Part shown: positions 29,106-59,295 of the stretch, piece after piece
Position numbering within the stretch: the first letter of the stretch is position 1
Layout of the letters: each line of letters opens with the position of its first letter
Sequence record: NC_041917.1
Reading direction: 5' to 3' (one strand)
Length of the DNA stretch: 64,000 nucleotides
Made by a program: the position numbers and the translations under genes
The notes under the pieces: model-generated
Seen by the model: the letters and a program-made list of their open reading frames with translations, nothing else
Database searches by the model: none
Told to the model about the DNA's origin: nothing

Positions 29106-29224
29106 CGGGAATTGGTGTAATGGCAGCACAACGTTATAACATAAATTCTTGTACAGGAATTTCACAGCAACCAATACAATTGCATAGGGAGCCGTGAGAT
29201 AAGGTTCGATTCCTTGATTCCCGA
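29106..29224 (+). tRNA. interrupted tRNA with ACAGCAA element in anticodon arm (isotype uncertain, possibly Ala TGC)
   Basis: intact acceptor, D and T arms; insert has hairpin AAATTC/GAATTT then ACAGCAA at 29164. Confidence 0.7.
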
Positions 29225-29431
29225 CTAATTAACTAAACCAGCACATTGCTGGTTTTTTCATTTCTGGAGTTTTATAATGAAGATATTAAAGTTACACAAA
29301 ACTGTAGGATATATTAAAATTACATTATTAAAAAATAATCCACAATATGGCGGTCGCTGTGATACGTGTGGAAGATATGATAATGATGGTGGCCCACTAT
29401 GTGGTAATGTTTTTTGTCCAGGAGGAAACTG

Positions 29432-29686
29432 ATGAATCCTAATGATTTAAATAATTCCGAAAAATATACATGGTGTTATACATGGTCTGATCTTCGTGAG
29501 AACTATGATAAGCTAAAACTTGTCAATCAAGAATTTATTGAATTGCATGGGTTTGCAATTCCTGATGATGTTAAAGTTGGTGATGTTTTTGTAGTAGTTG
29601 AACTGACTGAAGATCATGGTACTCGTGTTGATCGTGGTTTCGTTATTCCTCGTCATTATCTTGACTTCTTTGAGGCAAACTGCTAA
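29432..29686 (+). CDS. hypothetical protein
   Basis: SD GGAGG. Confidence 0.7.
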   Translation: MNPNDLNNSEKYTWCYTWSDLRENYDKLKLVNQEFIELHGFAIPDDVKVGDVFVVVELTEDHGTRVDRGFVIPRHYLDFFEANC

Positions 29687-30474
29687 TGCACTTTTTAATA
29701 ATGGACAAATACTTTAATGAAGAAGGATTCCGTGTAATGAAAGATTACATGGTACAACATAATATATCCCATACTTCAGTAAAACCTGTCCCTGTACTTA
29801 ATATATTCGTTCCTGAAGATGTTAATGATTATTCAGACGCTTCATATGAGAAGTATTTTGATAAATCTGTACCAACTATGTCATTTGGAAGCTATGCATT
29901 AGCTAATCAACTTATACAAGAAGGATATACTCCTGGTGGTTATATTAATGAGAACTTTAATATAAAAGTACAAATGGAACATTGGGGATTAGATAGTTTT
30001 CTTAATGGAATGGCTATTTTTGGGACGTTAGAAAATATGACTGCTCCTGATTGGAAACGTATTTTTATTCGTCCAGTACACGATACTAAACAAATGTTGG
30101 CTACCGTTATTGAAAAAGAAAACTTTGATTATTCTTTAGAACTATTTCGTTATGGTAAAGAACCAGGATTTGAAATTATGATCTCTGAATTTAAAGAAAT
30201 TAAAGCAGAGTTTCGTTTGTTTATTGTTCATGGTAAAGTTGTTGCACATTCATTATATAAGTTGAATGGTTCAGTTTGTATTGCATCATCTGTTCCTGAA
30301 GAAATAATTACAAAAGCAGAAGAACTATGTAATATTTGGACACCTGCTGATGCGTTCGTAATGGATTTTGCCGAAACTGTTGACGGATTTAAAGTACTCG
30401 AAGTTAATAACATAAACTGTGCTGGATTCTATGCATGTGATATTCCTTCAATTGTTGAGGCATTTATAAAATGA
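29686..30474 (+). CDS. ATP-grasp fold protein (DUF4343-like), paralog 2
   Basis: FIRP, EFRLFIV, VMDFA and VLEVNNINCAGFY motifs. Confidence 0.8.
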   Translation: MHFLIMDKYFNEEGFRVMKDYMVQHNISHTSVKPVPVLNIFVPEDVNDYSDASYEKYFDKSVPTMSFGSYALANQLIQEGYTPGGYINENFNIKVQMEHWGLDSFLNGMAIFGTLENMTAPDWKRIFIRPVHDTKQMLATVIEKENFDYSLELFRYGKEPGFEIMISEFKEIKAEFRLFIVHGKVVAHSLYKLNGSVCIASSVPEEIITKAEELCNIWTPADAFVMDFAETVDGFKVLEVNNINCAGFYACDIPSIVEAFIK

Positions 30475-30839
30475 AAAATCATTTGAACGAGTACTTTGAA
30501 GGATTAGATAATCTCATATTTGAATTTTATGAAACTATAAATCAAAATATTAGTTCAAAAACAATAACTATTCAGATGACTTTTTTATATAATAAGCATA
30601 TAAATTTTCATTATAATATTGAAAATGACGAATTAGTTATAGAAGATTTTGTTGATAAAATAAAATTAAAATATCCAAATTTCTCAAAACTTCAAGATGA
30701 AGCTTATCATTTTCAAAAAATGACAGTATGGCCTCATATTAGTTTTGAATGTACTGAAGTTGAGAAATTTATGATTGAAATTGAAAGGATTAAAAATGAA
30801 ACCAAATTTACCCCAAGAGCCAAATCCGAATTTGATTGA
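30471..30839 (+). CDS. hypothetical protein, EExxFQ paralog family
   Basis: QDEAYHFQKMT motif. Confidence 0.7.
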   Translation: MKNHLNEYFEGLDNLIFEFYETINQNISSKTITIQMTFLYNKHINFHYNIENDELVIEDFVDKIKLKYPNFSKLQDEAYHFQKMTVWPHISFECTEVEKFMIEIERIKNETKFTPRAKSEFD

Positions 30840-31032
30840 AAGTATGTGTATGCGTTTTGATCACTCACATGGTATTAGATCTCTACGTATGAAAGATGGT
30901 AAGTACGATGTTGAAACGGAAGAAGAATTTGAACGTAGGCGAGATTCGAATCGTAGAGTAATGCGGCAATTGTATGAAGAAGTATCTGGTTATGGATTTT
31001 ACCAATATCCAAAGGATAGTACTGATGAATGA
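30796..31032 (+). CDS. hypothetical protein
   Basis: SD AAGGA. Confidence 0.75.
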   Translation: MKPNLPQEPNPNLIESMCMRFDHSHGIRSLRMKDGKYDVETEEEFERRRDSNRRVMRQLYEEVSGYGFYQYPKDSTDE

Positions 31033-31456
31033 AATAGTAAGAAAACAACTTCATGATATAGCGAATAATGCACATTGCATTTATACTACCATAATCAGAG
31101 AACGAGTTAAGTATTCAAAATTTGGGTCAAAGGTTGGCATTCAGATTGATAATGCAATTCAATTTTCTAATACACCTGATAAATTTGAAATGTGGATTAA
31201 ATTTGGAAAACATACTATTATATATACTGATAACAGCGTAATATATCGTTATTGGGATAGTAAGAAGCCAGATAAACATATATATGATGTGATTGATTTA
31301 CCTGATATAAATAAATTTCAATTCACCGAGGAATATTATTTTCAGTACTCTACATTATTCAATTTCAAGTATTTAGAGTTAGAAGATCTTAAAGCACTTG
31401 ACACTATACGTAGAAAGGTACAAAACATTTGGAGTACACAATTACTATGTTGGTAA
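31025..31456 (+). CDS. hypothetical protein, EExxFQ paralog family
   Basis: FTEEYYFQYST motif. Confidence 0.75.
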   Translation: MNEIVRKQLHDIANNAHCIYTTIIRERVKYSKFGSKVGIQIDNAIQFSNTPDKFEMWIKFGKHTIIYTDNSVIYRYWDSKKPDKHIYDVIDLPDINKFQFTEEYYFQYSTLFNFKYLELEDLKALDTIRRKVQNIWSTQLLCW

Positions 31457-31632
31457 CACGTTATGAATTAATTGATGGGGAATTGATACCTCATGAATTT
31501 GGTGAATATGTAAAATTCACTGATTATAAAAAAGTGGAAGATGCCAGAAGTAAAGCAGTATCTGATGCTGGTTGGGCTGCTGATGCAGCACGTGAACAAG
31601 AAGAAATAAATCGTAATAGAGGATGGAATTAA
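31429..31632 (+). CDS. hypothetical protein
   Basis: ORF track; start uncertain. Confidence 0.65.
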   Translation: MEYTITMLVTRYELIDGELIPHEFGEYVKFTDYKKVEDARSKAVSDAGWAADAAREQEEINRNRGWN

Positions 31633-31862
31633 TGGCTATAAAAGCAAAACTTAATTTTTGTGATCTAGATTTAGATTATGCACGTACAGCATGGGATGGT
31701 GCATACATGGTACTAGCAGAAGTTAATGAAGTACTGAAAGAACGTGGAATTAAAATTGAATTTTTGTTAGAAGTTCATTCGGAAGAAGATTATCCTTCTA
31801 AGTTTTGGGATGAAGAAGATGTTGAATACACTACTAATACTACGGAAATTACTGACGAATGA
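31632..31862 (+). CDS. hypothetical protein
   Basis: TAATG coupling. Confidence 0.7.
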   Translation: MAIKAKLNFCDLDLDYARTAWDGAYMVLAEVNEVLKERGIKIEFLLEVHSEEDYPSKFWDEEDVEYTTNTTEITDE

Positions 31863-32365
31863 AAGATCCTAATCTCAATAATGAATTTATCGATTTTTTA
31901 GCAGATGAATTTCCAGAGGTATCGTTTAGTACTACATACGTACATTGGCACCCATCTGTAGGTGAGTACTGTGTATATATCAATGACACGTGGAGTGGTT
32001 ACGTTCCTGAAGAATATATATTTAAAGCCGGATTTGAGTATTATACTCTTTGGTCTAAGTATTGGGAAAAGTACCGTCAAACTGAAATTTTTATGGATTT
32101 AAATAGAAAATATGTTCAATCAATTTATAACATTCTTCAAGAAGAAAATACTACTGAATCTGATATTAGCCTTAATGTACGTATTCTTATGGACATTATA
32201 CGGAATCGCTCGTACCCTACAGATTATCAAAATTTTACCATAAAGATGATATTAGAAGTATTACAAAATAAAGGATACAATCAGTACACAGAAATGTTAG
32301 AAAACATTATTGGTGAAATAAATGACTTGGAAGAAAATAAACGAAGTCGTAGGAAGGTTTTATAA
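31859..32365 (+). CDS. hypothetical protein
   Basis: coupled ORF. Confidence 0.75.
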   Translation: MKDPNLNNEFIDFLADEFPEVSFSTTYVHWHPSVGEYCVYINDTWSGYVPEEYIFKAGFEYYTLWSKYWEKYRQTEIFMDLNRKYVQSIYNILQEENTTESDISLNVRILMDIIRNRSYPTDYQNFTIKMILEVLQNKGYNQYTEMLENIIGEINDLEENKRSRRKVL

Positions 32366-32768
32366 AAACTTTAGTACATTAAGAAAAACAGTTAATCGTG
32401 GAGATTATTGTTATTTTAAACTTAATGATTATTATGAGATTAAATGTGGTGATGATTATTTGGTTCAATTTAAGTATAAACCAAATAGTCAAGATTATTA
32501 TTATATGAATTATGATTATAATAATGATTCTGTTATGTTTTATACAACTAGAAAGTATTCTGGTTATTGGAAACATTCAGCACCTGATAATATCATAATA
32601 TTTAAGAACTTAACAAGGTTATGTACAGAGGAAGGACATTTTCAGGAAATGACCAGACAGGACTTGACAGATTTTGAAATTCCTGATATAATTTCCTTAT
32701 TGATGATGGGAAAAGCCATCGTTGACAAAACTAAGGAATATAGAAATGTCGGAACGTCCAGTACTTAA
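32322..32768 (+). CDS. hypothetical protein, EExxFQ paralog family
   Basis: CTEEGHFQEMT motif. Confidence 0.7.
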   Translation: MTWKKINEVVGRFYKNFSTLRKTVNRGDYCYFKLNDYYEIKCGDDYLVQFKYKPNSQDYYYMNYDYNNDSVMFYTTRKYSGYWKHSAPDNIIIFKNLTRLCTEEGHFQEMTRQDLTDFEIPDIISLLMMGKAIVDKTKEYRNVGTSST

Positions 32769-33177
32769 TTATAAATGTTACATTCTTCTTCGTGAAGATC
32801 TTGACATGCCGCAAGGTAAATTTGCTGTACAGGTAGGGCATGGTTTAGATCAAGTATGGCCTCTATATATGGACTACAAAGAACGTAGTCGTAAAGAGGA
32901 TAATGAAGATTTAATCATGCCTGTTTCTAACTTTGAAGGTTGGTATAAAGAAGGTCGTCGCAAGATAGTACTACGCCTTAAAAGCGAAGACCATATGAAC
33001 AAGATTAAAGAAAAAATTCAGGCTGAAATTGATTCTAATGAATATCATCCTGGATATTTTGTTCATGATATTTTTGATTATGGTTTTAACTTCTTTGATG
33101 GGTTAACACAAACTGGCCTTATCATTTATCCGAACCAAACAGAAATTGCAGCAGTAAAAAGACTACGATTGTGGTAA
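32746..33177 (+). CDS. peptidyl-tRNA hydrolase 2 (PTH2)-like protein
   Basis: YILLREDLDMPQGKFAVQVGHG, RKIVLR, D.G..T motifs. Confidence 0.8.
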   Translation: MSERPVLNYKCYILLREDLDMPQGKFAVQVGHGLDQVWPLYMDYKERSRKEDNEDLIMPVSNFEGWYKEGRRKIVLRLKSEDHMNKIKEKIQAEIDSNEYHPGYFVHDIFDYGFNFFDGLTQTGLIIYPNQTEIAAVKRLRLW

Positions 33178-33183
33178 AATAAA

Positions 33184-33212
33184 TGAAACAGAAATAAAAA
33201 TTGTGGTATAAT
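33184..33212 (+). promoter_or_regulatory. TGAAAC-class promoter
   Basis: TGAAAC-17-TATAAT before tRNA-Leu. Confidence 0.75.
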
Positions 33213-33226
33213 ATAAATATAATAAA

Positions 33227-33307
33227 GGGGATATGGTGGAATTGGTAGACACCGTGGTCTTAGAAGCCACCGCCTTGTGCGTGGGAGTTCGAGTCTCCCT
33301 ATCCCCA
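33227..33307 (+). tRNA. trnL: tRNA-Leu(TAG)
   Basis: class II cloverleaf, loop CT-TAG-AA. Confidence 0.92.
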
Positions 33308-33424
33308 CAAACGTAGATTCAGTAACCCGCTCTATGATGGTTTGAATCGTTCGAGTGCGTAGCACAGTAGAGCCATACGTGGCTCTCGCCCTTTTTGATT
33401 CATTTGGTAACATTCATTATTTGC

Positions 33425-33453
33425 TTGACAGTACCTCATCTTTGTGTGATAAT
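33425..33453 (+). promoter_or_regulatory. sigma70-type promoter
   Basis: TTGACA-17-GATAAT. Confidence 0.7.
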
Positions 33454-33509
33454 ATCTGTACAGGCGTTTAAGCTGCTAACGCAGCTTTTTTTATTTGTGG
33501 AGATTGACA

Positions 33510-33908
33510 ATGAAACGTGAAGCAATGAGCAGTACTAATTTGTATTGGTTTATATTCTTCTGGATCGCATTTACTTGTGTTAATATATACGTTGTTATGT
33601 ATAAACCAGAAGCGAACTGGAAAGAAAAAATCGAAACGCAAGTTAAAGCTGAATACAAAAAGAATGAACCAGCACCACCTGATGCAATGCGTCAAAACCA
33701 ACCAGCATATATCCAAATGCTAAACGATATTCAAAAATGTCCTAATGTTACTGACAAAGAAAATAATACTTTCTATACCTGTGAAAATGGTACTAAAGCT
33801 AGTATGATACATTGGACACGTGGTGACAAGAAAGGTGTAGTTACTCGTGAATATAATCCTGAAGGTAAATTAATCTTAATCTACGGACACCCTGATGATG
33901 TTTACTAA
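33510..33908 (+). CDS. membrane-anchored protein
   Basis: N-terminal TM helix. Confidence 0.8.
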   Translation: MKREAMSSTNLYWFIFFWIAFTCVNIYVVMYKPEANWKEKIETQVKAEYKKNEPAPPDAMRQNQPAYIQMLNDIQKCPNVTDKENNTFYTCENGTKASMIHWTRGDKKGVVTREYNPEGKLILIYGHPDDVY

Positions 33909-34143
33909 AATTGAAAATGCCGAAGTACTTGTTCGAACCAGTTCTGGACTAAAAGTACTACCCCTCTATACCCGCAATAGTAATAACCATGTATATGCTA
34001 AAAATGGTGCATACTATATTGCCCTAATGTCAACTAAACTAACAAGTAATCCTAAAATTACTTGGCAGGAAGTATCTATTCCTGAACAATTCGAAAAGAG
34101 CTACATGACTTATGCACAAACATGCAAAGAATCTGTCAGTTAA
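33898..34143 (+). CDS. hypothetical protein
   Basis: ORF track. Confidence 0.7.
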   Translation: MFTKIENAEVLVRTSSGLKVLPLYTRNSNNHVYAKNGAYYIALMSTKLTSNPKITWQEVSIPEQFEKSYMTYAQTCKESVS

Positions 34144-34345
34144 TGACATGGTTAAAGTAGCTAAAGATGAGTACTTGAAAGTTATTAAAATCGAGTACTT
34201 TGAATATTCTGTTCGCATTCAGGGATTCATTAACTATGGAACTGAATGTGAACAGCGTAGTTTTGGCTACTGTGATGTTGTATTCCTTAAAGCTGATGAA
34301 AAACCATCCAGCTTATTCTCAAGAATAATGAAGTACTTTACATGA
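34112..34345 (+). CDS. hypothetical protein
   Basis: ORF track. Confidence 0.65.
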   Translation: MHKHAKNLSVNDMVKVAKDEYLKVIKIEYFEYSVRIQGFINYGTECEQRSFGYCDVVFLKADEKPSSLFSRIMKYFT

Positions 34346-34513
34346 AAAATCCCGTATATTTAATGAGCACTCATAATGGTCGTACTTTTATGATGACTAG
34401 CTATGATCCAAAAACAATCGTTATCTTTGAAAATCCTGTAAAAGAGCTTGACAAAGATGGCAACGAACTGGTATTCTATACCACAATAGAAATTCGCAAG
34501 ATGTGAGAACAAA

Positions 34514-34768
34514 ATGACAAAAGTAGTCCGTAAGCGTCGAGTACTTGATAATGATGAATTCAAATCAAGGGAAATCCATCGCCAATTGTGGCGACGACTG
34601 TGTGCTGGTGAAAAGCAAATTGTTGTAACTGAAACAGTAGTTGAACCAGAAACTATTTTTGGGACGTACTTCAATGTATTCAATCATTTTATTAAAAAAG
34701 GATTACTTGAAGTAATTACTATTGATGAGTTAGATCCATCTGAACACGAATTCACTGTAATTAAATGA
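34514..34768 (+). CDS. hypothetical protein
   Basis: ORF track. Confidence 0.7.
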   Translation: MTKVVRKRRVLDNDEFKSREIHRQLWRRLCAGEKQIVVTETVVEPETIFGTYFNVFNHFIKKGLLEVITIDELDPSEHEFTVIK

Positions 34769-34776
34769 GGTGACAT

Positions 34777-35142
34777 ATGTCTTGGAACAACCGAGTAAGT
34801 ATTCATGAACATACTTACCAAGATGGTGAAAAAGAAAGTACTGCAACTGTGCATGAAGTATATTACACTGATGATGGTGTAATGTTCAGTGCTGCAATCG
34901 CTCCACAGGGTTCAGGTTCTAACAGTACTGAAGCACTTCAAGAATTGAAGTTAGAACTTCAGTTAATGCTTGAAGCAGTAGAATACGCACTTGATGGAAA
35001 AACTTCTATTTTTGATTATGATAACAAAGATACCCACGATGCGGGTGAACATTCTGAAATTATTCGTAAACGAAATGAAGTTAAAGTACTTGATCCTGAT
35101 GATGCGTATCTTGATGAAAAGTATGGTGATAATGATGACTGA
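34777..35142 (+). CDS. hypothetical protein
   Basis: SD GAGG; MSWNNRV..HEVYY phage motif. Confidence 0.8.
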   Translation: MSWNNRVSIHEHTYQDGEKESTATVHEVYYTDDGVMFSAAIAPQGSGSNSTEALQELKLELQLMLEAVEYALDGKTSIFDYDNKDTHDAGEHSEIIRKRNEVKVLDPDDAYLDEKYGDNDD

Positions 35143-35413
35143 TGCAGAGTTTTTAAAACAAGCTGAAGAAGATCTTTGGACTCAAGTTCAAAATCTTCGA
35201 AATCGAAGCAATGAAGCCCTTGAAGAAGGTGCTACATATCGCTTTGTTCTTTGTAATGCTAAAATCAGTTTTATTAATTCACTTTTACGTGATATTCAAT
35301 TCGCAAGGTCTGGACATGCACCTGACATTGTGGTAAAATCAACAATAGAAGCAGTGAAGCACGTTGAAGAAAATTTCAAGCCGTTTTTAGGCCAGTGCGG
35401 AACGTGTAATTGA
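35132..35413 (+). CDS. hypothetical protein
   Basis: start reassigned. Confidence 0.7.
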   Translation: MMTDAEFLKQAEEDLWTQVQNLRNRSNEALEEGATYRFVLCNAKISFINSLLRDIQFARSGHAPDIVVKSTIEAVKHVEENFKPFLGQCGTCN

Positions 35414-35426
35414 TTTGGAGGATAAC

Positions 35427-35951
35427 ATGGATCTCAACCGGATAGAAGTAATCAAAAAACTTAATGAACTAGCGTTGGTTTATCAAAAACAAGCACAGGA
35501 AGTTTTTTGTTTATTCGATTATAAATTTGAATTTGGGCTTTCAGTTCATTTCAAAGACCGTGTGATGCAGCGTTATCCTACATATGAAATTGCTGAAAAT
35601 CTTATTAAGCAAAATTTTGATTTGTTTTTCAAGAATCATACTCAATATATTTCACGAGCAATCACTGAAGTTGTTGATGTAAAGTTAGTTAATATTCGTC
35701 ATGATTCTTTGAATAAACAAAATGTCATCGTACTACAAATGTGTCGAATTGATGACATTATAAAAATAATTGGTATTACGATGTTTCAAAAAAATACATC
35801 ATATATCAAAAATAACCCAAATGAATTTGTACTATTACATAAACCAAAAAAATGGACTTCATTGGGAACAGTTGGTGAACGATTAAAACGATACGCCAAA
35901 AAACATGGCGTACCTGATGGGTTACAATGCTTAACCCAACCGTGGGGGTAA
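35427..35951 (+). CDS. hypothetical protein
   Basis: SD GGAGG. Confidence 0.8.
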   Translation: MDLNRIEVIKKLNELALVYQKQAQEVFCLFDYKFEFGLSVHFKDRVMQRYPTYEIAENLIKQNFDLFFKNHTQYISRAITEVVDVKLVNIRHDSLNKQNVIVLQMCRIDDIIKIIGITMFQKNTSYIKNNPNEFVLLHKPKKWTSLGTVGERLKRYAKKHGVPDGLQCLTQPWG

Positions 35952-35955
35952 TAAC

Positions 35956-36657
35956 ATGCATTCAGATATGAAAGCTGCATTAGATGCTGCGTTAGAAGAC
36001 ATTAAAAATATGTCATCTGATGACTTCTTTGCAAAATTGTATGGTTACAATTCAGAACAGTTGGAAGCCTATACTGAAGAAGTATTTTTAGTCGAGCTTC
36101 AGTACTTGAGAAGTTTCTTTGTAGATGGGGCATATTCTTTTGAACCAAGCTATGATAATCTTCCAGTACCAGAAATTACGAAGTTGTTTTGGAATTATAT
36201 TGAAAGAAATGCTCGTAGCACATATGAAGACACGTCTACATCATTTCCAACATATTACGTTGAATTGCCTAAGTATGGTATTCGTGTCACGCACATTTAT
36301 GGTCAAGGCACTGTTACCGTTGTAGAAGACTTTGATTATTCTGATCCCATGTATATTGTTAAGAACATTACACGTTTTAAGCGTGAAGCTGCATGGGAAC
36401 ATCAACGTAAAATTGATGAATTATTGTATGGAAAACCAAAACATTTAGATGAAGTACGTTTTAGTACTGAAGTTAATGGTATTGGTATTGTGGATACTGG
36501 TATCATTGAACGTGTGTACACCAAGAAAGGTGTAGTGCGATATTTGATTGATTCTGTTAATAACGGTAAAGTACTAGTATTCTACGATCAGGGTGAAAAA
36601 TATCCAATGGATGCAGTAGAAATAATTGAACTTCATCCAAACAACTACGATAGGTAA
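35956..36657 (+). CDS. hypothetical protein
   Basis: ORF track. Confidence 0.8.
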   Translation: MHSDMKAALDAALEDIKNMSSDDFFAKLYGYNSEQLEAYTEEVFLVELQYLRSFFVDGAYSFEPSYDNLPVPEITKLFWNYIERNARSTYEDTSTSFPTYYVELPKYGIRVTHIYGQGTVTVVEDFDYSDPMYIVKNITRFKREAAWEHQRKIDELLYGKPKHLDEVRFSTEVNGIGIVDTGIIERVYTKKGVVRYLIDSVNNGKVLVFYDQGEKYPMDAVEIIELHPNNYDR

Positions 36658-36663
36658 TATATC

Positions 36664-37005
36664 ATGGAAATTGATTATAAGCTGGTGCGTGAGTTAACTC
36701 ATGATTTGGAAATGAACGGTCGTCAATTTATTGCACGTGATCGTTTAATTCAGCAAATGAAAGCTGATGGAACTTATGATGTTAAGCACGGTCAGGATTT
36801 AATTTATTTCCATGTAGTAAGTGGAATGATTAATTCCATTATTGAAAAGATCTTTATGTACTTAGAATATAAAACTGTAAATGAAGGTCTTGAAAGTGCA
36901 TTTCGTGGTTTAGTGGAAAAAGAGTACAACGAATATAAAGAATATTATAACCATTGTGATTTTTTATCTGCAATGGATAGAAAGTACGGATTGAATCTAT
37001 TATGA
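36664..37005 (+). CDS. hypothetical protein
   Basis: ORF track. Confidence 0.75.
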   Translation: MEIDYKLVRELTHDLEMNGRQFIARDRLIQQMKADGTYDVKHGQDLIYFHVVSGMINSIIEKIFMYLEYKTVNEGLESAFRGLVEKEYNEYKEYYNHCDFLSAMDRKYGLNLL

Positions 37006-37199
37006 ATATTGAACAAAAACTTACACCTAAGTATTGGGCTGCACATGATTCCCGTACTGATGATGTTATTTTAAGTACCTTGTTTAAGTACAAGCAAGAT
37101 ACATATGATGAATTAGTGAAGTTGTATGGTGAAGATTGGGAAGATACACATCCTAATTTGACTATTGACTTAATTGAACTGAAGTTAGTTCAACTGTAA
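37002..37199 (+). CDS. hypothetical protein
   Basis: coupled ORF. Confidence 0.7.
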   Translation: MNIEQKLTPKYWAAHDSRTDDVILSTLFKYKQDTYDELVKLYGEDWEDTHPNLTIDLIELKLVQL

Positions 37200-37210
37200 C
37201 AGAATACTGA

Positions 37211-37460
37211 CCGTTGTTGGGATGTTGGCTTAGAGGCAGCAATCATATAATGAGTGTCGAGAACGATCCGTAATTGGTAAACGTACCACAATGACCAATC
37301 GTATAAGTTCAGGGGAAGAAAAGACCGGATACAGTTATGTTAGTACGGTATGCACGGGCGGCGTATACTTAATACAGGAAAGGTAGGTGGTACTACTTTG
37401 TACTGATAAATGCTAACATAGACCCTTAGAGACTTTGGCGTAATAGCACACCATCAACGG
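37211..37460 (+). ncRNA. ncRNA containing a split mimic of the 23S rRNA L11-binding (H43-H44) domain
   Basis: GGATGTTGGCTTAGAGGCAGCAATCATATAATGAGT ...182 nt... GCGTAATAGCACAC, closed by CCGTTG/CAACGG. Confidence 0.75.
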
Positions 37461-37492
37461 CTTTTTAATTAAAATAATATATGGTATAACCT

Positions 37493-37825
37493 ATGACTAT
37501 TAAAGTTAACGGTACTGTAACTGAAGTAAAATCAGTTGAAGTTGATATTAGCATAGTTGAACTCGAAAAAGCGGCAAATCAGTTGACAAACGGACAACTT
37601 CTTATTATATTAAAACGGAAGTTGGTTCAACAATTAATTTCAAAAGATCCTGCACTACAAGGTGCAGAACTTTCATGGCATGGTACATGTTGGGAAGTTT
37701 TTGATTACTATGATTATCATCATCGTGAAGATAAGTACAAAAAACTTCGTGATTTAAATGATGAAGAAAAGTACGCACTATCCACATTCAACGATGTATT
37801 TGAACTATTCAGGAAATTACAATGA
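37493..37825 (+). CDS. hypothetical protein
   Basis: ORF track. Confidence 0.75.
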   Translation: MTIKVNGTVTEVKSVEVDISIVELEKAANQLTNGQLLIILKRKLVQQLISKDPALQGAELSWHGTCWEVFDYYDYHHREDKYKKLRDLNDEEKYALSTFNDVFELFRKLQ

Positions 37826-38079
37826 CAGTACAAAAATTTGAAAAGTTACCTATCCAGATTGATGCCCTTGAATGGACTGGTAATAATCTTAAAGAGTTAA
37901 AAGCCTTTGCGAGTCCAAAAGAAGTAAAGATTAATAATATGGGTCATTGCAAAATTGAAACTTTAGAAGGCTGGTTAACTGCATCGATTGGTGATATGAT
38001 CATCAAAGGTGTACAAGGGGAAATTTACCCATGCAAACCTGATGTGTTTGCACTAACGTATCGTAAAATTGAGGAATAA
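37822..38079 (+). CDS. widespread conserved phage protein of unknown function
   Basis: IETLEG..GD.IIKGV.GE.YPCKPD.F..TY motif. Confidence 0.85.
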   Translation: MTVQKFEKLPIQIDALEWTGNNLKELKAFASPKEVKINNMGHCKIETLEGWLTASIGDMIIKGVQGEIYPCKPDVFALTYRKIEE

Positions 38080-38082
38080 AAA

Positions 38083-38421
38083 ATGACGCACTAGAATGAT
38101 AAAACTTGGATCTATGTATTTGTTCGTACTGATTTACCAATCGAACAAGTTGTAGTACAATCAAACCACGCCGCTTATGAAAGCGGATTAGCATTCGAAA
38201 ATAACAGTACTGAGACTAGTTCTCTAATCGTTATCTCGTGTAAGAATAAACATAAGTTACAAAAAGCATATGATGAACTCCAAGCTGAGGGTATTGATTT
38301 AATTCAATTCCATGAACCAGATTGGGATTATGGTTTAACTGCATTTGCCAGTGCTCCAGTAACCGCTGAACAGCGTAGTATCTTCCGTAAGTTTCAACTT
38401 TTTCGTGGAGGTGCTAAATGA
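38083..38421 (+). CDS. PTH2-like protein with in-frame TAG at codon 4 (readthrough candidate; missed by ORF track)
   Basis: SD GAGG + ATG-ACG-CAC-TAG, then 108 open codons with YVFVRTDLP..Q..VQ..HAA and FHEPD..LTA motifs. Confidence 0.75.
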
Positions 38422-38984
38422 TTTATCCTAACACTTTCGAAGAATTGCTACAAGTAATGCAAAAAACTGAGCAAATGAAAGGTCTTAGTGTTCATGCACA
38501 TGGACTTATGGTTGTTGAACAGTATAAAGTACTAATTTCAGAACTTGACACTGGATAGGGCGACCCTATATTACTTGAGGTATATGGTAAAATTAAAGAT
38601 AAGATTTTATCAGATGATATTGTATTACGTTACCAAGAGTTTCATGATTGTGGTAAACCAATATGTCGTGTAGTTGATGATGAGGGTAAAGTTCATTTCC
38701 CTGAACATGCTAATATCAGTGCAGATGTTTGGAGTAAGCTATTTCCAAATGAAAATGTCATTCAAGAGTTGATGCGAAAAGATATGACTTTCCATGTTGC
38801 AAAATCTGATGATTTTGATACAATATGGCAAGATCCTTTAGCACCTACTTTGTATGTAACTGCATGGGCTGAGATTTTAGCGAACTGTACAATGTTTGGT
38901 GGTCAGGATAGCACTTCTTTTAAAATTAAAAAGAAGAAGCTAATTCAAGCAGGTAAAAAGTACTTAAACTCTTTACCTAAATAA
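38418..38984 (+). CDS. HD-domain phosphohydrolase with in-frame TAG at codon 47 (readthrough candidate)
   Basis: SD GGAGG, ATGA coupling; one TAG at 38556-58, then HDCGKP..F.EHA motif in the same frame. Confidence 0.75.
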
Positions 38985-39026
38985 TTTTAAGGCGGCTACG
39001 GTCGCCTGTTTTAAGAGGTTTCCATT

Positions 39027-39488
39027 ATGGAAAGTAAAAATACTGAAAATGTAATGACTGTTGAAATTTTCAAAGGAGCCACGCAAGAAACTATTTTTGT
39101 GTGTCGTTCACAAGGACAGTACTTTGCACCTGACCAAACGTATGATATTCATGAACATGAATACATCAAACGCTACGATACACATTTTTATCATAAAATT
39201 GATGAAAAGAATTGTCGAGAAAGTCATCGTGAAATCATGTTTGGTAAAGATGGAAAACCTGGATATATCTTTAGTTTAGCTAAAGGTTTATCAAAATCAT
39301 ATAATTTAGGTGAACTTGACAGTATTGTATTCACTTTTAGTGGATATGGTGACTGTACGGGTGAAACCTTTATTGTTAGTACTCTAGACTATGCAGAAAA
39401 GGAAGAATTTCAGCAAATTGTCGATGACAAGGAATTACTCTTTAGTAAGTTTAAAGAAGCATTCCCTGAACATGAATTAAATTTATAA
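39027..39488 (+). CDS. hypothetical protein
   Basis: SD GAGG. Confidence 0.8.
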   Translation: MESKNTENVMTVEIFKGATQETIFVCRSQGQYFAPDQTYDIHEHEYIKRYDTHFYHKIDEKNCRESHREIMFGKDGKPGYIFSLAKGLSKSYNLGELDSIVFTFSGYGDCTGETFIVSTLDYAEKEEFQQIVDDKELLFSKFKEAFPEHELNL

Positions 39489-39497
39489 GGATGTATT

Positions 39498-39689
39498 ATG
39501 ATTACTACTGAAAATGTAACGCTATACGATACCCTAAATGAATCATATGGTTCTCCGTATGGCTTAGGATATAAGGGATATATCTTTGTGTTCGAAACTG
39601 TTGCTGAACGTGATTCTTGGATAAATGAATGCACCGACGAAGACTTAGATTATATCATTGAAAATGAAAGTGTAGAAACCGAGGATTAA
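39498..39689 (+). CDS. hypothetical protein
   Basis: SD AAGGA. Confidence 0.7.
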   Translation: MITTENVTLYDTLNESYGSPYGLGYKGYIFVFETVAERDSWINECTDEDLDYIIENESVETED

Positions 39690-39693
39690 AACT

Positions 39694-40044
39694 ATGGGTT
39701 CGAATGTAGAAGCTTCAATTAATGTAAAACTTGTAAAACAACCACGTGGTATGAAAGGTGCTAAACCTGATATTGAACAAATTCATACTGATTTGTGTTC
39801 TATTGTTGAAAATGAAACGTTTTCTATTCATAGTAATACTAATATTGTGGCTGAACCAGAATGTCGTTGGAGTGAAATAGATTCTGATATGAAAAAATTA
39901 TCAGTACTATATCCTGGAATTTTATTCACGGTTAAAGTTGTTATTCCAGACTATGAAGTAAATGAACTACATTACTTCTATGAAGGTAAAACTCACGAAG
40001 CTGTGATCACATTCTCACCATTCGATGAAGCACTTTTGAAATAA
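39694..40044 (+). CDS. hypothetical protein
   Basis: SD GAGG. Confidence 0.8.
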   Translation: MGSNVEASINVKLVKQPRGMKGAKPDIEQIHTDLCSIVENETFSIHSNTNIVAEPECRWSEIDSDMKKLSVLYPGILFTVKVVIPDYEVNELHYFYEGKTHEAVITFSPFDEALLK

Positions 40045-40062
40045 ATAAAGTACCACAAAAAA

Positions 40063-40091
40063 TGAAACAATATTATTTTTTGTGGTATAAT
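40063..40091 (+). promoter_or_regulatory. TGAAAC-class promoter
   Basis: TGAAAC-17-TATAAT before tRNA-Arg. Confidence 0.75.
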
Positions 40092-40100
40092 ATTAGTATT

Positions 40101-40172
40101 CTCCTGTTAGCTCAATGGATAGAGCAGTAGCCTTCTAAGCTATAGATATAGGTTCGATTCCTATACGGGAGA
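40101..40172 (+). tRNA. trnR: tRNA-Arg(TCT)
   Basis: cloverleaf, loop CT-TCT-AA. Confidence 0.92.
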
Positions 40173-40214
40173 CAAAACAAATACGCCTAAGCATATGCTT
40201 GGGCTTTTTTATGG

Positions 40215-40625: not shown

Positions 40626-40626
40626 C

Positions 40627-41665: not shown

Positions 41666-41741
41666 GCCTTTGTAGCTCAGTTGGTAGAGCGGGAATCTCT
41701 AAAATTCTTTGTCGTCGGTTCGAGTCCGACCATCGGCACCA
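41666..41741 (+). tRNA. amber suppressor tRNA (anticodon CTA)
   Basis: stem GGAAT/ATTCT, loop CT-CTA-AA, canonical D and T arms, encoded CCA; two acceptor-stem mismatches. Confidence 0.85.
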
Positions 41742-46917: not shown

Positions 46918-47033
46918 GCAGTGATCGTCTAGAGGCTTAGGACACGAAAAAGCGATTCTTGGTTAAGAATCTTACGGCATCAATAAACTTTCATTTCACG
47001 AACGTAACGCAGGTTCGAATCCTGCTCACTGCA
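46918..47033 (+). tRNA. interrupted tRNA-Glu(TTC), 43-nt insert 46947..46989
   Basis: removing the insert gives CGTTC-ATTTCAC-GAACG; insert = GATTCTT/AAGAATC hairpin + ACGGCAT. Confidence 0.75.
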
Positions 47034-47363: not shown

Positions 47364-47489
47364 GTGGGGTTAGCTCAGTCTGGTAGAGCAGCGAAAGAAA
47401 AAACAATGGAATCTTGAAAAGGATTCTAACAGCATTATATCTTCTACTGTAAATTCGCAGGTCGGTGAGTTCAAATCCACCATCCCACA
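47364..47489 (+). tRNA. interrupted tRNA-Tyr(GTA)-like (short variable region), about 51-nt insert 47396..47446
   Basis: removing the insert gives GCGAA-CTGTAAA-TTCGC; insert = GAATC/GATTC hairpin + AACAGCA. Confidence 0.75.
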
Positions 47490-47499: not shown

Positions 47500-47528
47500 T
47501 TGACATGGTGTATCCTGTGTGTTATATT
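47500..47528 (+). promoter_or_regulatory. sigma70-type promoter
   Basis: TTGACA-17-TATATT. Confidence 0.65.
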
Positions 47529-47562
47529 ACTATCATCAATTAAACGAGATAGGATTTAAATT

Positions 47563-47835: not shown

Positions 47836-47837
47836 AA

Positions 47838-48203: not shown

Positions 48204-48560
48204 ATGAAAGTTTATGTAGATGATATTCGTAATCCACAAAACCATCTAAGTTCTGAACAGGCAGCCGATGTAGTGTGGATTAAAGAATGGTGGGATGCAC
48301 GTAACTTTATCTTTTATAATAATTTAGAAATTGAAGTGATTCATTTAGATAATTATCTAGGTGACCGTACCCACACTGGTGCTGATTTACTTCGAATGAT
48401 TACATATAGGTTTCGCCGTGGGGAATTCCCTAAGTTGAAACAAATTTATCTTCACAGTTCTGATAAAGATATTGTGAATAAACTGTATGACACACATATT
48501 GAATGTTGTACAGAAGCTGGTGTTGAATTAATTAAAAATTCACGTCCAAACCGTAGTTAA
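48204..48560 (+). CDS. cyclic-phosphate-processing receiver (cREC)-like domain protein, paralog 2
   Basis: KVYVDDIRNP..IEVIHLDNYLG..TGADL; clear tandem duplicate. Confidence 0.7.
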   Translation: MKVYVDDIRNPQNHLSSEQAADVVWIKEWWDARNFIFYNNLEIEVIHLDNYLGDRTHTGADLLRMITYRFRRGEFPKLKQIYLHSSDKDIVNKLYDTHIECCTEAGVELIKNSRPNRS

Positions 48561-48566
48561 ACAAAT

Positions 48567-48691
48567 GGCGAGTTAGCTCAGTTGGTAGAGCACGTAGAAA
48601 CCCAAGATTCAAGTACTTGAATCTTACAGCAACAATAACTCATACACTTTTAATGTCGTGGTCGTTGGTTCGAATCCAACACTCGCCGCCA
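48567..48691 (+). tRNA. interrupted tRNA-Lys(TTT), 49-nt insert 48595..48643
   Basis: removing the insert gives CGACA-CTTTTAA-TGTCG; insert = AAGATTCAAGTACTTGAATCTT + ACAGCAA; encoded CCA. Confidence 0.8.
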
Positions 48692-48708
48692 AATAATAAG
48701 GAGTACAT

Positions 48709-57348: not shown

Positions 57349-57798
57349 ATGTCTGATAAGCATCAATTTAAAGTAAACATCGGTGATTGGTCACAAGATG
57401 GTCATAATCAATATGATGTTTTAGTTCTTAACAGTACTAAACCAGTAGATGAAGTACAAAAAGCATTTAAAAAAGCTGCAACAGATTTACATTTACTAGT
57501 AAATGGTCGTTTTCTAATTGCAGATGAATTTGAAGATTGTAGTCTATCTGAAGACCATGCAGAAGTTCTTAAAAATGCAGGTGTAAAATTTGATGATTTA
57601 GTGTATAATGATGGCGATGATGAAGAACCAAATTATATTATTGAAGGTTCAAGTGATATGACTATCCTAGTGATGCGTATCGCCCAACTTGAATTGGACT
57701 TTGAATTTGAAATTACGAATGATGCAATTCCGAACTTTAACGGGTTCTGGACAGAAGAACAAATGCCATCAATCGGATATGGTTTGTATAACATATAA
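57349..57798 (+). CDS. hypothetical protein
   Basis: IGDWSQDGH phage motif. Confidence 0.8.
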   Translation: MSDKHQFKVNIGDWSQDGHNQYDVLVLNSTKPVDEVQKAFKKAATDLHLLVNGRFLIADEFEDCSLSEDHAEVLKNAGVKFDDLVYNDGDDEEPNYIIEGSSDMTILVMRIAQLELDFEFEITNDAIPNFNGFWTEEQMPSIGYGLYNI

Positions 57799-57807
57799 AA
57801 CAAGTTT

Positions 57808-57872
57808 TGGAATCTAGCAGCACCCATAAAATGAAATCAACTGTTAATTGAAAAATTCAAAAATGGATTCCA
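57808..57872 (+). ncRNA. ACAGCAA-type element carrying only an Asn(GTT) anticodon stem-loop
   Basis: TGGAATC/GATTCCA, GCAGCA, CCAT/ATGG, TCAA-CTGTTAA-TTGA. Confidence 0.65.
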
Positions 57873-58162
57873 GCCTATTTCGGAGTAAAAAAATGTATTA
57901 TGCTCGATTAGAATATCCAAACAATGGATATGAGATTGAAAGAATACGTCTTAAAGCCTTAGATCGCAAAAAGTACTATCCAGTAGTTTCGATTGATATT
58001 GGTAGTTCAAGTACTCGCATATATCTTGAAGGTGATAAGAATGCATATAATAGTGTGAACTTTGAATTCTATACCAAACATGGTGATGAATATATTCTTG
58101 AAGATATTTTCGAAGACCCTGATTTAAACCCGTACTTGGATGATGATGACGAAGAATATTAA
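57862..58162 (+). CDS. hypothetical protein
   Basis: ORF track; start uncertain, overlaps the element. Confidence 0.65.
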
Positions 58163-58182
58163 ATAAAAATACCACAAATAAA

Positions 58183-58211
58183 TGAAACGCTTCAAAAAAT
58201 TGTGGTATAAT
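58183..58211 (+). promoter_or_regulatory. TGAAAC-class promoter
   Basis: TGAAAC-17-TATAAT before tRNA-Asn. Confidence 0.75.
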
Positions 58212-58230
58212 ATAAGTAAGTTAAACAAGA

Positions 58231-58302
58231 GGTTATGTCGTATAAAGGTTATTACGGAGAGCTGTTAACTCTTTTATCTTGGTTCGATTCCAAGCATGAC
58301 CG
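58231..58302 (+). tRNA. trnN: tRNA-Asn(GTT)
   Basis: GAGAG-CTGTTAA-CTCTT. Confidence 0.88.
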
Positions 58303-58419
58303 CAAAAAGTTAAATTCACCAGGCGTACTATGGTGGGAAAGGTATCATGATACCAATTCGAATAGAATACGTATTAAACCCTTGAACGGTTTTCTGTAAA
58401 CTCAATTTAACAAATAATT

Positions 58420-58474
58420 AAGAATCTAACAGCAATAAAAACTCATTCGATTATATGAAAAAAGATAGATTCTT
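58420..58474 (+). ncRNA. minimal ACAGCAA element
   Basis: near-copy of 56178; abuts tRNA-Gln. Confidence 0.65.
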
Positions 58475-58479
58475 GTTTT

Positions 58480-58552
58480 AGGAGTATGGTGTAATTGGTT
58501 AGCACACGTGACTTTGACTCACGTAGTTGAGGTTCGAGTCCTTATATTCCTG
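58480..58552 (+). tRNA. trnQ: tRNA-Gln(TTG)
   Basis: CGTGA-CTTTGAC-TCACG. Confidence 0.9.
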
Positions 58553-58703
58553 CAAATTAAAATTTCATTCATTTCCTTGTGTGAAACAAGCTGGTATGAT
58601 TCCCCTTGCTTGTAAAATTATCGAACGGGAACCGCGTTGCACCTGTACAGGTCAGATTGTAAAGATCGAGTATGTACAGTACTGAGAGCGGCAGTACAAC
58701 AAA

Positions 58704-58785
58704 GCGGGATTAGCTCAGTGGTAGAGCACTTGCCTTCCAAGCAAGAGGCGAATAGGTTCCATCGGTTCGAATCCGATATTCCGCT
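58704..58785 (+). tRNA. trnG: tRNA-Gly(TCC) with unusually long variable region
   Basis: CTTGC-CTTCCAA-GCAAG; 15-nt variable region. Confidence 0.85.
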
Positions 58786-58903
58786 CAAACTAAACAAACA
58801 ATAAGGTGATTTTTATGCTATAGAATCCTAGTACTGGTCCTCCTAAAGAATTTAATTCTGATATAAACAACTCAAAATTAAACTACTATAGGAAGAACAT
58901 ACC

Positions 58904-59230
58904 ATGTTAAACAAAGAACAATATATTACTGTAAAAAATACTTGGAAAGCTGTAAAAGAACATAACATTTTTGATCATGTGATCTATAATGTACTTCGTG
59001 GAGTCCCATCTGATACTGGTTTCGCACCAATTACAGACAGGGGTCGTTTACACGCTAACAACAATGACCCGTTCAATATGTACAATTTCGCAGTTCGTGA
59101 AATTCATTATGAATTAAACGAAAAACGGTACAATTACGAAAAGACAGTAAAGCATTATTCTGAACTATTCGGCATTGAATTTACAAAAGAACTCATCGAA
59201 GAAATTGTTTCTTTGATTAAAGTTAAATAA
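58904..59230 (+). CDS. hypothetical protein
   Basis: SD AGGA. Confidence 0.8.
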   Translation: MLNKEQYITVKNTWKAVKEHNIFDHVIYNVLRGVPSDTGFAPITDRGRLHANNNDPFNMYNFAVREIHYELNEKRYNYEKTVKHYSELFGIEFTKELIEEIVSLIKVK

Positions 59231-59238
59231 CAGAATTA

Positions 59239-59295
59239 AAGAATCCAGCAGCAACTAAAACTCATTCGCTTAATATGAAAAAGAAACGGATTCTT
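59239..59295 (+). ncRNA. minimal ACAGCAA-type element (GCAGCAA)
   Basis: AAGAATCC/GGATTCTT; compensatory change (T-A to C-G) versus 58420. Confidence 0.65.

Follow-up and report, generated by a model that had tools for sequence, protein, structure and literature searches.

A repeated helix-plus-RCAGCAA RNA module inside, around and beside tRNAs of Serratia phage BF and related jumbo phages

Why should the same short RNA element recur inside tRNA genes, around tRNA-like bodies and on small intergenic hairpins in the tRNA island of a phage? This question is raised by a window of 64,000 nucleotides (nt) that matches Serratia phage BF (NC_041917, Eneladusvirus; a jumbo phage of 357 kilobases, kb) with 100% identity at about record positions 248-312 kb. 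The window holds most of the BF tRNA island, with 20 tRNAs detected by ARAGORN and 21 by Rfam, all on the plus strand, as are the elements, genes and hairpins of the window described below. The element, which we call the handle, is a short helix (H) followed by a single-stranded RCAGCA(A) core. We find the handle to be genuine, an RNA module conserved in a jumbo-phage clade, specific to one strand, associated with tRNAs and previously undescribed: we found no description of it in the literature, and in RefSeq one interrupted tRNA (48567-48691) is entered as 'tRNA-OTHER/pseudo' and the remaining 14 handle copies have no annotation.

A sequence-only reading of this DNA had listed 15 copies, all in its tRNA-rich part, and a composite pattern combined with a helix check bears this out: each of the 15 positions holds the unit, on the plus strand and inside the tRNA island. 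RCAGCAA occurs 27 times in the window, against 14.6 +/- 3.2 in shuffles, and the composite G[AG][AT]T[CT]-N1-3-RCRGCA picks out 14 distinct sites on the plus strand and none on the minus strand, against a mean of 2.1 in simulated windows with both strands summed. The 15th copy, at 52861 (GAAATCT-C-ACAGCAA), is a helix variant that falls outside the pattern. At every pattern-matched site a partner arm pairs over 7-12 base pairs (bp), as against a median of 6 for shuffled arms, for which P(>=8) is about 0.10 and P(>=10) about 0.01. A covariance model trained on 18 short copies from four phages and run over the whole window scored the five short copies at 65-72 bits and two of the clasp copies, in which the handle encloses a longer cargo, at 37-38 bits; it gave no credible match on the minus strand, in the first 29 kb or elsewhere in the window. 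The handle has no Rfam match even at E<=10, the tRNA family being the only one to reach threshold in the window. In total, the copies comprise four interrupted tRNAs, six clasps and five short copies.

In its general form, the handle comprises an H of 6-10 bp, 0-2 nt, the single-stranded RCAGCA(A) and often then NCA and UAA. The next stem begins after about 11 nt in all, and the conserved single strand RCAGCA(A)-(N)CA-UAA that leads to it is about 18 nt long; the return strand to H, of about 9 nt, is A-rich (e.g. AGAAAAAAC or CUUAAAAAGAAA), and a T-rich tract follows the 3' arm. The usual center of H is GAAUC/GAUUC. The helix had been described as 6-9 bp and rich in this sequence, which is common but not required, and the length range extends to 10 bp: in phage XbC2 the helix sequence is wholly replaced (AAAUUACA/UGUAAUUU, then CGCAGCAA) with the core kept, and the core is likewise kept in the handles of Vibrio phage D479 (CCAAUC/GAUUGG-GUACCGCAA and GUAUCUU/AAGAUGC-UUUCAGCAA). 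Covariation of the helix, also claimed earlier, is upheld by an alignment of 18 sequences (A2), in which 92% of the cells are paired and three pairs of H vary on both sides (UA/AU, AU/GC and a UA/UG/CG series), the observed covariation score being reached by no shuffle. H covaries both within BF and across related phages. Since its U.G pairs would read C.A on the opposite strand, H is an RNA helix of the plus strand. For the core we found no consistent complement in any of the 15 copies, which suggests that it is probably read by a protein or engaged in tertiary contacts. An ACAGC/GCAUGU pairing of the core, proposed by RNAalifold for the 57198 family, is limited to that family. A handle-type stem without the RCAGCAA core also occurs in the window, as a terminator-like hairpin at 55520-55535 (GGATTC-GAAA-GAATCC, then T6).

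The phages GAP32, CBB and Yen9-04 have 14-15 copies each, in syntenic places, and further copies are present in XbC2, Kaldavass and D479. Complete elements were also recovered from about 10 IMG/VR contigs, always inside tRNA arrays and on the tRNA strand; the majority of the stretches listed by the underlying 14-mer scan of IMG/VR were chance matches. A 35-nt handle probe found no additional phage group; Yen9-03 also counts among the handle-positive phages, and the relatives RaK2 and 121Q appear to be without the handle. In two related metagenomic phages, L011 (4729, minus strand) and L108 (3457, plus strand), the same locus has the same handle and flanks, with the tRNA-like body only in L108.

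In four tRNAs the handle is closed by a loop, and with its two linkers it bulges out of the anticodon arm's 5' strand as an insert of 43-51 nt. ARAGORN recognizes none of the four as they stand and all four as canonical cloverleaves after in silico deletion of the insert; each then has a 5-bp anticodon stem and 7 loop nucleotides, among them U33 and a purine at position 37. In the tRNA-like gene at 29106-29224 the 48-nt insert (29134-29181) separates anticodon-stem positions 29 and 30, with the helix AAATTC (29143-29148)/GAATTT (29157-29162) and the core ACAGCAA at 29164-29170; without it, ARAGORN calls 'Pro' with the anticodon AGG in the loop AUAGGGA. Orthologues of this copy are found in GAP32, CBB, Yen9-04 and D479. 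The Glu(UUC)-like gene at 46918-47033 is interrupted between positions 28 and 29 by 43 nt (46947-46989) that comprise the helix GATTCTT (46954-46960)/AAGAATC (46965-46971) and the variant core ACGGCAT (46974-46980), and is called as tRNA-Glu(ttc) solely after their removal. The insert of the Tyr(GUA)-like gene at 47364-47489 (47396-47446, 51 nt) is placed at the stem/loop boundary, positions 31/32; its helix, TGGAATCTT (47407-47415)/AGGATTCTA (47420-47428), includes two G.U pairs, and its core is ACAGCAT (47429-47435). The T stem of this gene is weak, and both the tRNA-Tyr(gta) call and the closure of the loop CUGUAAA are obtained solely when the insert is removed; we take this loop to be exactly that of E. 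coli-type tRNA-Tyr. Finally, the Lys(UUU)-like gene at 48567-48691, which encodes CCA, carries 49 nt (48595-48643) between positions 28 and 29, with the helix AAGATTCAA (48604-48612)/TTGAATCTT (48617-48625) and the core ACAGCAA (48626-48632); Rfam scores it as a tRNA at 48.6 bits with a large insertion, and ARAGORN calls Lys(ttt) solely after removal.

Across orthologues of the Lys-type gene the two parts of the split anticodon stem always sum to 5 bp and both halves covary: CG+ACA in BF, CG+ACU in Yen9-04, CG+AGC in GAP32, CBB and D479, and GG+CCA in XbC2, each with its complement. The acceptor stem covaries across phages as well. The lower anticodon stems have just 2-3 weak pairs and are marginal unless continuous with the upper pairs. 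In D479, three handle-interrupted tRNAs of 116-124 nt each stand in tandem (L121, 188-593), and in the third of these the handle replaces the whole anticodon loop (CCGGC...GCCGG). A further BF tRNA, at 54006-54078, is weak (Rfam 36 bits), with an anticodon stem of 3 bp and a loop of 10 nt; it is without the handle insert found in its CBB counterpart (L003, 30663-30781), the loop of which is also 10 nt, and hence neither resembles a decoding tRNA.

In the six clasps the two arms of H enclose a cargo, which in five cases (52561, 52861, 53233, 56409 and 57197) is tRNA-like, in the order T arm, closed acceptor hairpin, D arm. The closed acceptor hairpins of these permuted copies covary and have no CCA. 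When the five were rotated and submitted to ARAGORN, with 416 junction trims each, they gave no call or inconsistent calls drawn from the A-rich linkers. They are tRNA mimics without an anticodon loop. The three architectures of the sequence-only reading (insert in an anticodon arm, clasp around a permuted tRNA, carrier of an isolated anticodon-like hairpin) are thus retained with two corrections, namely that the copy at 53386 clasps an RNA that is not tRNA-like and that the permuted copies of the window have no anticodon loop.

The clasp at 52553-52677 (helix 52561-52568/52670-52677, core 52569-52575) encloses a T arm, a closed acceptor hairpin and a mini D hairpin, and immediately upstream lies a promoter-like site (52514-52543) with a strong extended -10 (11/12 matches plus TG). 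Its leader AAGGCAA (52553-52559) is complementary to TTGCCTT in the acceptor loop (about 52626-52632). Similarly, in the permuted tRNA-like clasp at 52861-52978 (helix GAAATCT, 52861-52867/AGATTTC, 52972-52978; core 52869-52875) the leader AAAGCAAC (about 52848-52855) is complementary to GTTGCTTT in the acceptor loop (about 52933-52940). As these leader and loop sequences differ between the two paralogues, the pairing is probably real; it would make a pseudoknot that an L-shaped fold should not allow. Running directly into the latter clasp is a tRNA-like remnant (about 52740-52850) with a good T arm (GAGGGTTCGATCCCCTG), preceded by a promoter-like site (52698-52727) and called by neither ARAGORN nor Rfam. 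The clasp at 53233-53347, directly after a tRNA-Glu, has the helix AGGATTCG (53233-53240)/CGAATCCT (53340-53347), the core at 53242-53248 and a cargo of a T arm and a short closed acceptor hairpin; in its GAP32 and CBB orthologues the helix is AAGAATCG/CGATTCTT, a compensatory change. The non-tRNA-like clasp at 53386-53538 (helix GGATTTAT, 53386-53393/ATAAATCC, 53531-53538; core 53394-53400), with orthologues in GAP32, CBB and Yen9-04, holds 137 nt folded as multiple hairpins.

A permuted class-II-like tRNA body is enclosed by the clasp at 56409-56539 (core 56419-56425; 36.9 bits with the covariance model): it comprises an anticodon-stem remnant (ACAGC/GCTGT), a variable arm, a T arm, an acceptor hairpin closed by UUCG and a D region, and its stems covary in GAP32 and CBB. 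The permuted tRNA-like clasp at 57197-57318 (core 57207-57213; 38.5 bits) has a perfect D arm and T arm and an anticodon-stem remnant, GCCAC/GTAGC, with a conserved C.A mismatch; in a six-phage alignment, 8 compensated pairs support H, the T arm, the acceptor hairpin and the D arm. Between these two permuted copies, which have identical handles, lies an open reading frame (ORF) for a 199-amino-acid ADP-ribosyltransferase (56591-57190; ART-PolyVal, PF18760, E 2e-11). It is present in GAP32, and CBB_524 is annotated as similar to GAP32_436; its absence between the same two elements in Yen9-04 indicates cassette-like behavior.

The five short copies (54084, 56177, 57807, 58419 and 59239) have as their cargo a 4-5 bp hairpin alone. 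The first, directly after the tRNA at 54006-54078, spans 54084-54140 (65.1 bits), with the helix GGAATCTA/TGGATTCC including one U.G, the core GCAGCAA at 54092-54098 and an inner hairpin, UCAAA-CUUUUAA-UUUGA, with a Lys-like anticodon loop. The second (56177-56232; helix TTAGAATCTA/TAGATTCTAG; core 56187-56193; 69.8 bits) ends 5 nt before a tRNA-Ile and has the inner hairpin UCAU-UGGAUAU-AUGA. The third (57807-57873; core GCAGCAC, 57817-57823; 70.1 bits) lies in the 5' untranslated region of an ORF, and its Asn-like inner hairpin, UCAA-CUGUUAA-UUGA, is conserved in BF, Yen9-04 (two copies), GAP32, CBB and the locus L006. The fourth (58419-58475; core 58429-58435; 71.8 bits) ends 4 nt before a tRNA-Gln, and the fifth (59239-59295; helix AAGAATCC/GGATTCTT; core GCAGCAA, 59248-59254; 64.7 bits) lies between the stop of one ORF (59230) and the next ORF. 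We take CUUUUAA and CUGUUAA to be the E. coli Lys and Asn anticodon loops. The earlier view of the short copies as carriers of anticodon hairpins therefore fits two of the five; the other three loops are (U)GGAUAU-like, and the Lys-like loop is not conserved, being CCUAACC in CBB. Short and clasp copies alike occupy the gap from a stop codon to the following ribosome-binding site or lie a few nt from a tRNA end.

How the interrupted and clasped forms relate to each other is revealed by the IMG/VR locus L052, a complete permuted gene with a handle arm at either end, between which follow the core, the lower anticodon stem and loop, the T arm, the acceptor hairpin, the D arm and the return strand. 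L052 and the interrupted BF gene at 29106-29224 have one and the same anticodon stem, ACGGC/GCCGT, and L052 gives a cloverleaf when rotated without the handle. Because the two share this stem and both yield cloverleaves, the interrupted and permuted forms are circular permutations of each other, as the sequence-only reading had proposed.

Interrupted and permuted versions of one RNA are otherwise known only with cut-and-rejoin processing, in the archaeal and algal systems based on the bulge-helix-bulge (BHB) motif (PMC4090602), and this favors a comparable processing here. As in archaeal and algal BHB introns at non-canonical positions and in the permuted tRNA genes of Cyanidioschyzon merolae (PMC4090602), one signal is found inside tRNAs and around permuted tRNAs, inserts can sit in the anticodon stem, and one tRNA can have interrupted and permuted versions; removal of the insert or rotation restores a tRNA in four window copies and L052, though not in the five permuted window copies. 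However, the handle differs in that inspection of its junctions finds strands of 7-12 and 15-20 nt rather than a 3-nt bulge, 4-bp helix and 3-nt bulge, in having a bacterial host, and in that most of its permuted copies have no anticodon loop. The tRNA introns of Lak megaphages (PMC6784885) lend further support to excision, being likewise conserved short phage tRNA inserts of unexplained mechanism that can hold tRNA-like pieces; yet they come from another phage lineage with another host (Prevotella), and the published Tyr intron, 93 nt at 37/38, is without the helix and RCAGCAA.

Other identities failed on size, fold or context. The inserts, at 43-51 nt, are far too small for a group II intron, and also for a group I intron, the core of which takes about 200 nt or more; moreover, they lie mostly in the stem rather than the loop, and Intron_gpI gave no match at E<=10. 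With H as P1 or P2, the complements demanded by a fold like that of the hepatitis delta virus (HDV) ribozyme are absent, and an apparent P1 at 56178 (AGUUUU/AAAACU) does not recur in other copies. The earlier statement that the motif matches neither BHB, group I or II introns nor HDV-like ribozymes thus holds after junction inspection, measurement of insert size and the Rfam search. A hammerhead was rejected as the UGAUGA...GAAAC of 52561 comes without stem II, and a K-turn as there is no tandem G.A. ARAGORN finds no transfer-messenger RNA, including the two-piece permuted type, and the recurrent CAG-CAA-NNA-UAA stands without the start/resume context; a mini-ORF or tag was rejected as well, for want of a start codon and of continuity with any upstream ORF. 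RCAGCAA-CCA is seen in about a third of the copies, and one chance IMG/VR match to the 14-mer (L071) is the 3' end of a genuine tRNA; nevertheless, H is no mimic of a T arm with 3' acceptor and CCA, having neither a T loop nor a 5' partner strand, and at 6-7 nt the CCA is too distant from the helix for a hairpin substrate of RNase P. Hfq (ARN)n and CsrA GGA-loop sites are fitted by some copies alone.

A relative overlooked by the sequence-only reading is the YrlA-like Y RNA (RF02553, PMC4201824). In YrlA, the tRNA-like domain is arranged as T arm, closed acceptor-like stem and D arm, an order also present at 57231-57293; a closing stem with a conserved motif joins both ends, several RNAs share one stem in modular fashion, and such RNAs are found in phages and in an RNA-repair gene context. 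The YrlA model aligns 57231-57293 of the clasp at 57197 to its positions 24-84, scoring 40.3 bits against a gathering score of 69, on the tRNA-like part alone, and no other copy was matched. The GNCGAAN0-1G motif close to the YrlA 5' end, the presumed Ro60/Rsr contact (PMC4201824), is absent from the copy alignments, in which the 5' strands of the handle read (U/A)(A/G)GAAUC(U/C)A-RCAGCAA. While YrlA has a Ro60/TROVE gene within about 4 kb on the same strand, no TROVE-sized ORF lies within 20 kb of the handles: Pfam scans of 40 window ORFs gave no TROVE hit, and there is no ORF of at least 230 amino acids between 36.7 and 64 kb. In addition, the handle reaches 15 copies per genome and occurs also inside complete tRNAs and on plain hairpins.

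Between the interrupted Tyr-like and Lys-like tRNAs are two tandem paralogues with the cREC domain (PF20274; 47838-48203, E 6e-8, and 48204-48560, E 6e-11), which are context and not part of the handle; the same pair stands beside the orthologous interrupted tRNA in GAP32 (L002, 24354-25072). cREC, a cyclic-phosphate-processing receiver domain, is predicted to open or heal 2',3'-cyclic phosphate RNA ends for ligation (PMC7824862, PMC9503650), and phage BF has been named as carrying an RNA-repair neighborhood with sirtuin-2H-Nudix and cREC-PIN endoRNase genes (PMC9503650). CBB is reported to encode two RNA ligases, a Thg1-like enzyme, TyrRS and PTH2 (PMC5259590). Matches of neighboring small ORFs to PHROGs were all to families of unknown function, and HNH genes lie nearby in relatives.

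Tentatively, and with rather less than even confidence, we propose that the handle is an excision signal read by a protein, with RNA ligation to follow. A single dedicated protein, probably encoded by the phage, would read both the structure and the sequence of the handle; an endonuclease would cut at the two places where the single strands of the handle meet the neighboring stem; the ends would be healed, for instance by the adjacent cREC proteins together with a polynucleotide kinase/phosphatase, and a phage RNA ligase would rejoin them. The interrupted tRNAs would thereby lose the 43-51 nt bulge, leaving a nick in the anticodon-stem duplex in three of the four and a break at the stem-loop junction in the Tyr-like gene. 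With the nick inside a duplex in three cases, an Rnl2-type nick-sealing ligase would be the natural sealer. The expected products are mature Lys(UUU), Glu(UUC) and Tyr(GUA) tRNAs and the odd AGG species. Cutting clasp copies in this way would free the cargo from the polycistronic transcript or circularize it, and short copies would serve as intergenic processing sites. We infer these enzymatic steps, the cleavage sites and the occurrence of processing itself from sequence. The proposal draws on the regular 5-bp stems and 7-nt loops regained by deletion, the covarying halves of the Lys-type stem, the marginal lower stems, the Tyr-type loop that closes only without the insert, the permuted counterpart in L052, the Lak precedent, the exact placement of short copies between cistrons or beside tRNA ends, the cREC pair in both BF and GAP32, the repair neighborhood attributed to BF, and the CBB ligases.

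Several observations weigh against such excision. Intact Lys(UUU) and Glu(UUC) genes are also present in BF, and on a constant body the anticodon loop of the Lys-type gene differs between phages (CUUUUAA in BF, GAP32, CBB and XbC2, AUGAUAA in Yen9-04, CCGUUAA in D479). The five tRNA-like clasps of the window have no defined anticodon at any junction, and so their excision yields no decoding tRNA. The linkers vary in length (8-16 and 7-12 nt), which leaves no fixed ruler for a cutting enzyme. From the Pfam scans of the 40 window ORFs, no endonuclease was identified that would cut the handle and no EndA homologue is known here, and tblastn with Rnl1 (more than 1500 records, the matches listed being to T4-like and 121Q-like phages) gave no confirmation that BF itself encodes an RNA ligase or a polynucleotide kinase. 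The linkage to cREC may reflect general tRNA repair in a tRNA island. To our knowledge, protein-dependent tRNA splicing is not known in bacteria and their phages.

The sequence-only reading had suggested either a splicing or processing signal or a scaffold for decoys. Excision and a handle that is kept fit the observations about equally well. On the latter account, which we consider possible if doubtful, the RNAs are stable and unspliced, the handle being a stem that binds one protein, comparable to the Ro60-binding stem of Y RNAs, and the variable cargo, whether a whole tRNA, a tRNA body or an anticodon-like hairpin, a mimic of parts of tRNAs. Such a mimic would lure or tie up enzymes that act on tRNAs (host anticodon nucleases, for example) or scaffold the RNA-repair enzymes of the phage. 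Loops presented by handle copies presumably match host-type Lys, Asn, Tyr and Glu loops. Tyr, Glu, Lys and Asn tRNAs are known nuclease targets (PMC10264068, PMC11464382, PMC11555353), and Ro/TROVE with a tRNA-like partner occurs in some jumbo phages (PMC7824862). The Y RNAs of one organism share the protein-binding stem and differ elsewhere, and YrlA and Yrn1 are connected differently and have their arms in different orders, interpreted by the authors as a sign of independent origins (PMC4201824); the YrlA order of the permuted copies, with its one 40.3-bit score, would fit alongside these. The absence of an anticodon and of CCA from permuted copies with covarying closed acceptor hairpins, the loops that change while the body stays constant and the presence of intact isoacceptor genes alongside also become less puzzling if the handle stays. 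On the other hand, the YrlA score is below gathering, and both the GNCGAAN0-1G motif and a TROVE-sized gene within 20 kb are missing; most short-copy loops are not anticodon-like and the Lys-like one is lost in CBB; the Tyr-like gene would present no closed anticodon loop with its insert in place; 3-bp A-U stems make poor decoys; and the cargo at 53386 is not tRNA-like.

It is unlikely that the handle is punctuation only, that is, a cassette for cleavage, stabilization or termination that host RNases or RNA polymerase would recognize and that would separate tRNAs and small mRNAs, with its repeats driving the shuffling of cassettes by recombination in the manner of the promoter-early stem-loops of T4-type phages and the tRNA-internal copies being degenerate pseudogenes. 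T4-type promoter-early stem-loop cassettes and T7 RNase III sites are repeated intergenic stems that punctuate polycistronic early regions and flank genes that come and go. The handle resembles these as a repeated intergenic stem flanking variable cassettes, as seen in the ADP-ribosyltransferase ORF between identical handles in BF and GAP32 that is absent in Yen9-04, and in the L011/L108 cargo; likewise, it lies between stop codons and ribosome-binding sites or at tRNA ends, is followed by a T-rich tract, and shares its GGATTC/GAATCC stem with the T6 hairpin at 55520. Yet such cassettes are without a conserved single-stranded core, tRNA cargo or insertion inside tRNAs, and punctuation explains neither the core nor why, from enterobacterial phages to a Vibrio phage, the interrupted tRNAs have kept split stems that covary, canonical loops and undamaged acceptor, D and T arms. 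RNase III needs a longer helix than H, which is too short for it. Even less probable, in our view, is a new small self-cleaving ribozyme core whose ends are then joined by a ligase. Small ribozymes such as the hammerhead and twister typically occur in circularly permuted forms and tolerate large inserts in their stems, and the handle has a conserved single-stranded junction of about 10 nt; theta ribozymes (PMC10879173) are likewise small structured RNAs in phage tRNA arrays, with a possible processing role. The handle, however, gives no HDV or other ribozyme hit at E<=10, no nested double pseudoknot can be drawn for it, and it is not fixed at tRNA 3' ends; HDV-like, hammerhead and K-turn folds fail in hand drawing, and the core has no conserved partner or pseudoknot and few conserved nucleotides besides CAGCA. 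We give least credence, and very little of it, to a repeat acting at the DNA level alone, either like a miniature inverted-repeat transposable element with terminal inverted repeats or as a target or scar of an HNH homing endonuclease. The inverted-repeat arms, the HNH genes of relatives and the presence or absence of cargo would agree with this, but the arms differ with compensatory changes, the G.U pairs fit plus-strand RNA only, the orientation is always that of the genes, and orthologous copies are syntenic across genera.

Disrupted tRNA genes, with introns in stems or in permuted order, have been regarded as an archaeal and eukaryotic specialty dependent on BHB and EndA; here enterobacterial and Vibrio jumbo phages show such patterns at the gene level with another conserved signal. 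The four interrupted tRNA genes, of which RefSeq has one as 'tRNA-OTHER/pseudo' and the others without annotation, may be functional. Should the handle be excised, the bacterial world would have a new RNA processing pathway, one that would explain interrupted and permuted tRNA genes in a bacterial virus and suggest a role or natural substrate for phage Rnl2-type ligases and cREC proteins. Phages of Enterobacteria and Vibrio might then run, though we regard this as doubtful too, a cut-and-rejoin system of their own without BHB or group I introns, in which the handle marks the excision, cREC-type proteins heal the ends and Rnl2-type ligases seal them. Should the handle instead stay in place, the outcome would be a new family of modular tRNA mimics comparable to Y RNAs, with a bearing on the arms race over tRNA-cleaving defense. 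In both cases each genome has about 15 conserved RNA genes without annotation, and the motif merits an Rfam entry.

Other features of the window and its relatives lie outside these elements. A tRNA with the anticodon CUA (41666-41741), called 'Pyl' by ARAGORN and annotated too in GAP32, CBB and Yen9-04, resembles an amber suppressor. The tRNA-Gly(UCC) at 58704-58786 (83 nt) and a tRNA-Lys(UUU) at locus L001 (20720-20806, 87 nt) each have a hairpin-sized insert in the variable region, which is unusual for class I tRNAs. In the middle of the tRNA island, an ORF of 76 amino acids (55549-55779) has an Acb2/Tad1 hairpin domain (PF24729, E 2e-19) and is likely to be a sponge for cyclic-nucleotide immune signals (anti-CBASS/Thoeris). 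Upstream of the island, Pfam detects a gene set related to nicotinamide adenine dinucleotide (NAD) and ADP-ribose (2891-4030, 11377-12369, 16156-17214 and 22101-22931), comprising TelA, an ADP-ribosylglycohydrolase, a NadR-like protein (cytidylyltransferase plus AAA_28) and ATP-grasp R2K proteins.

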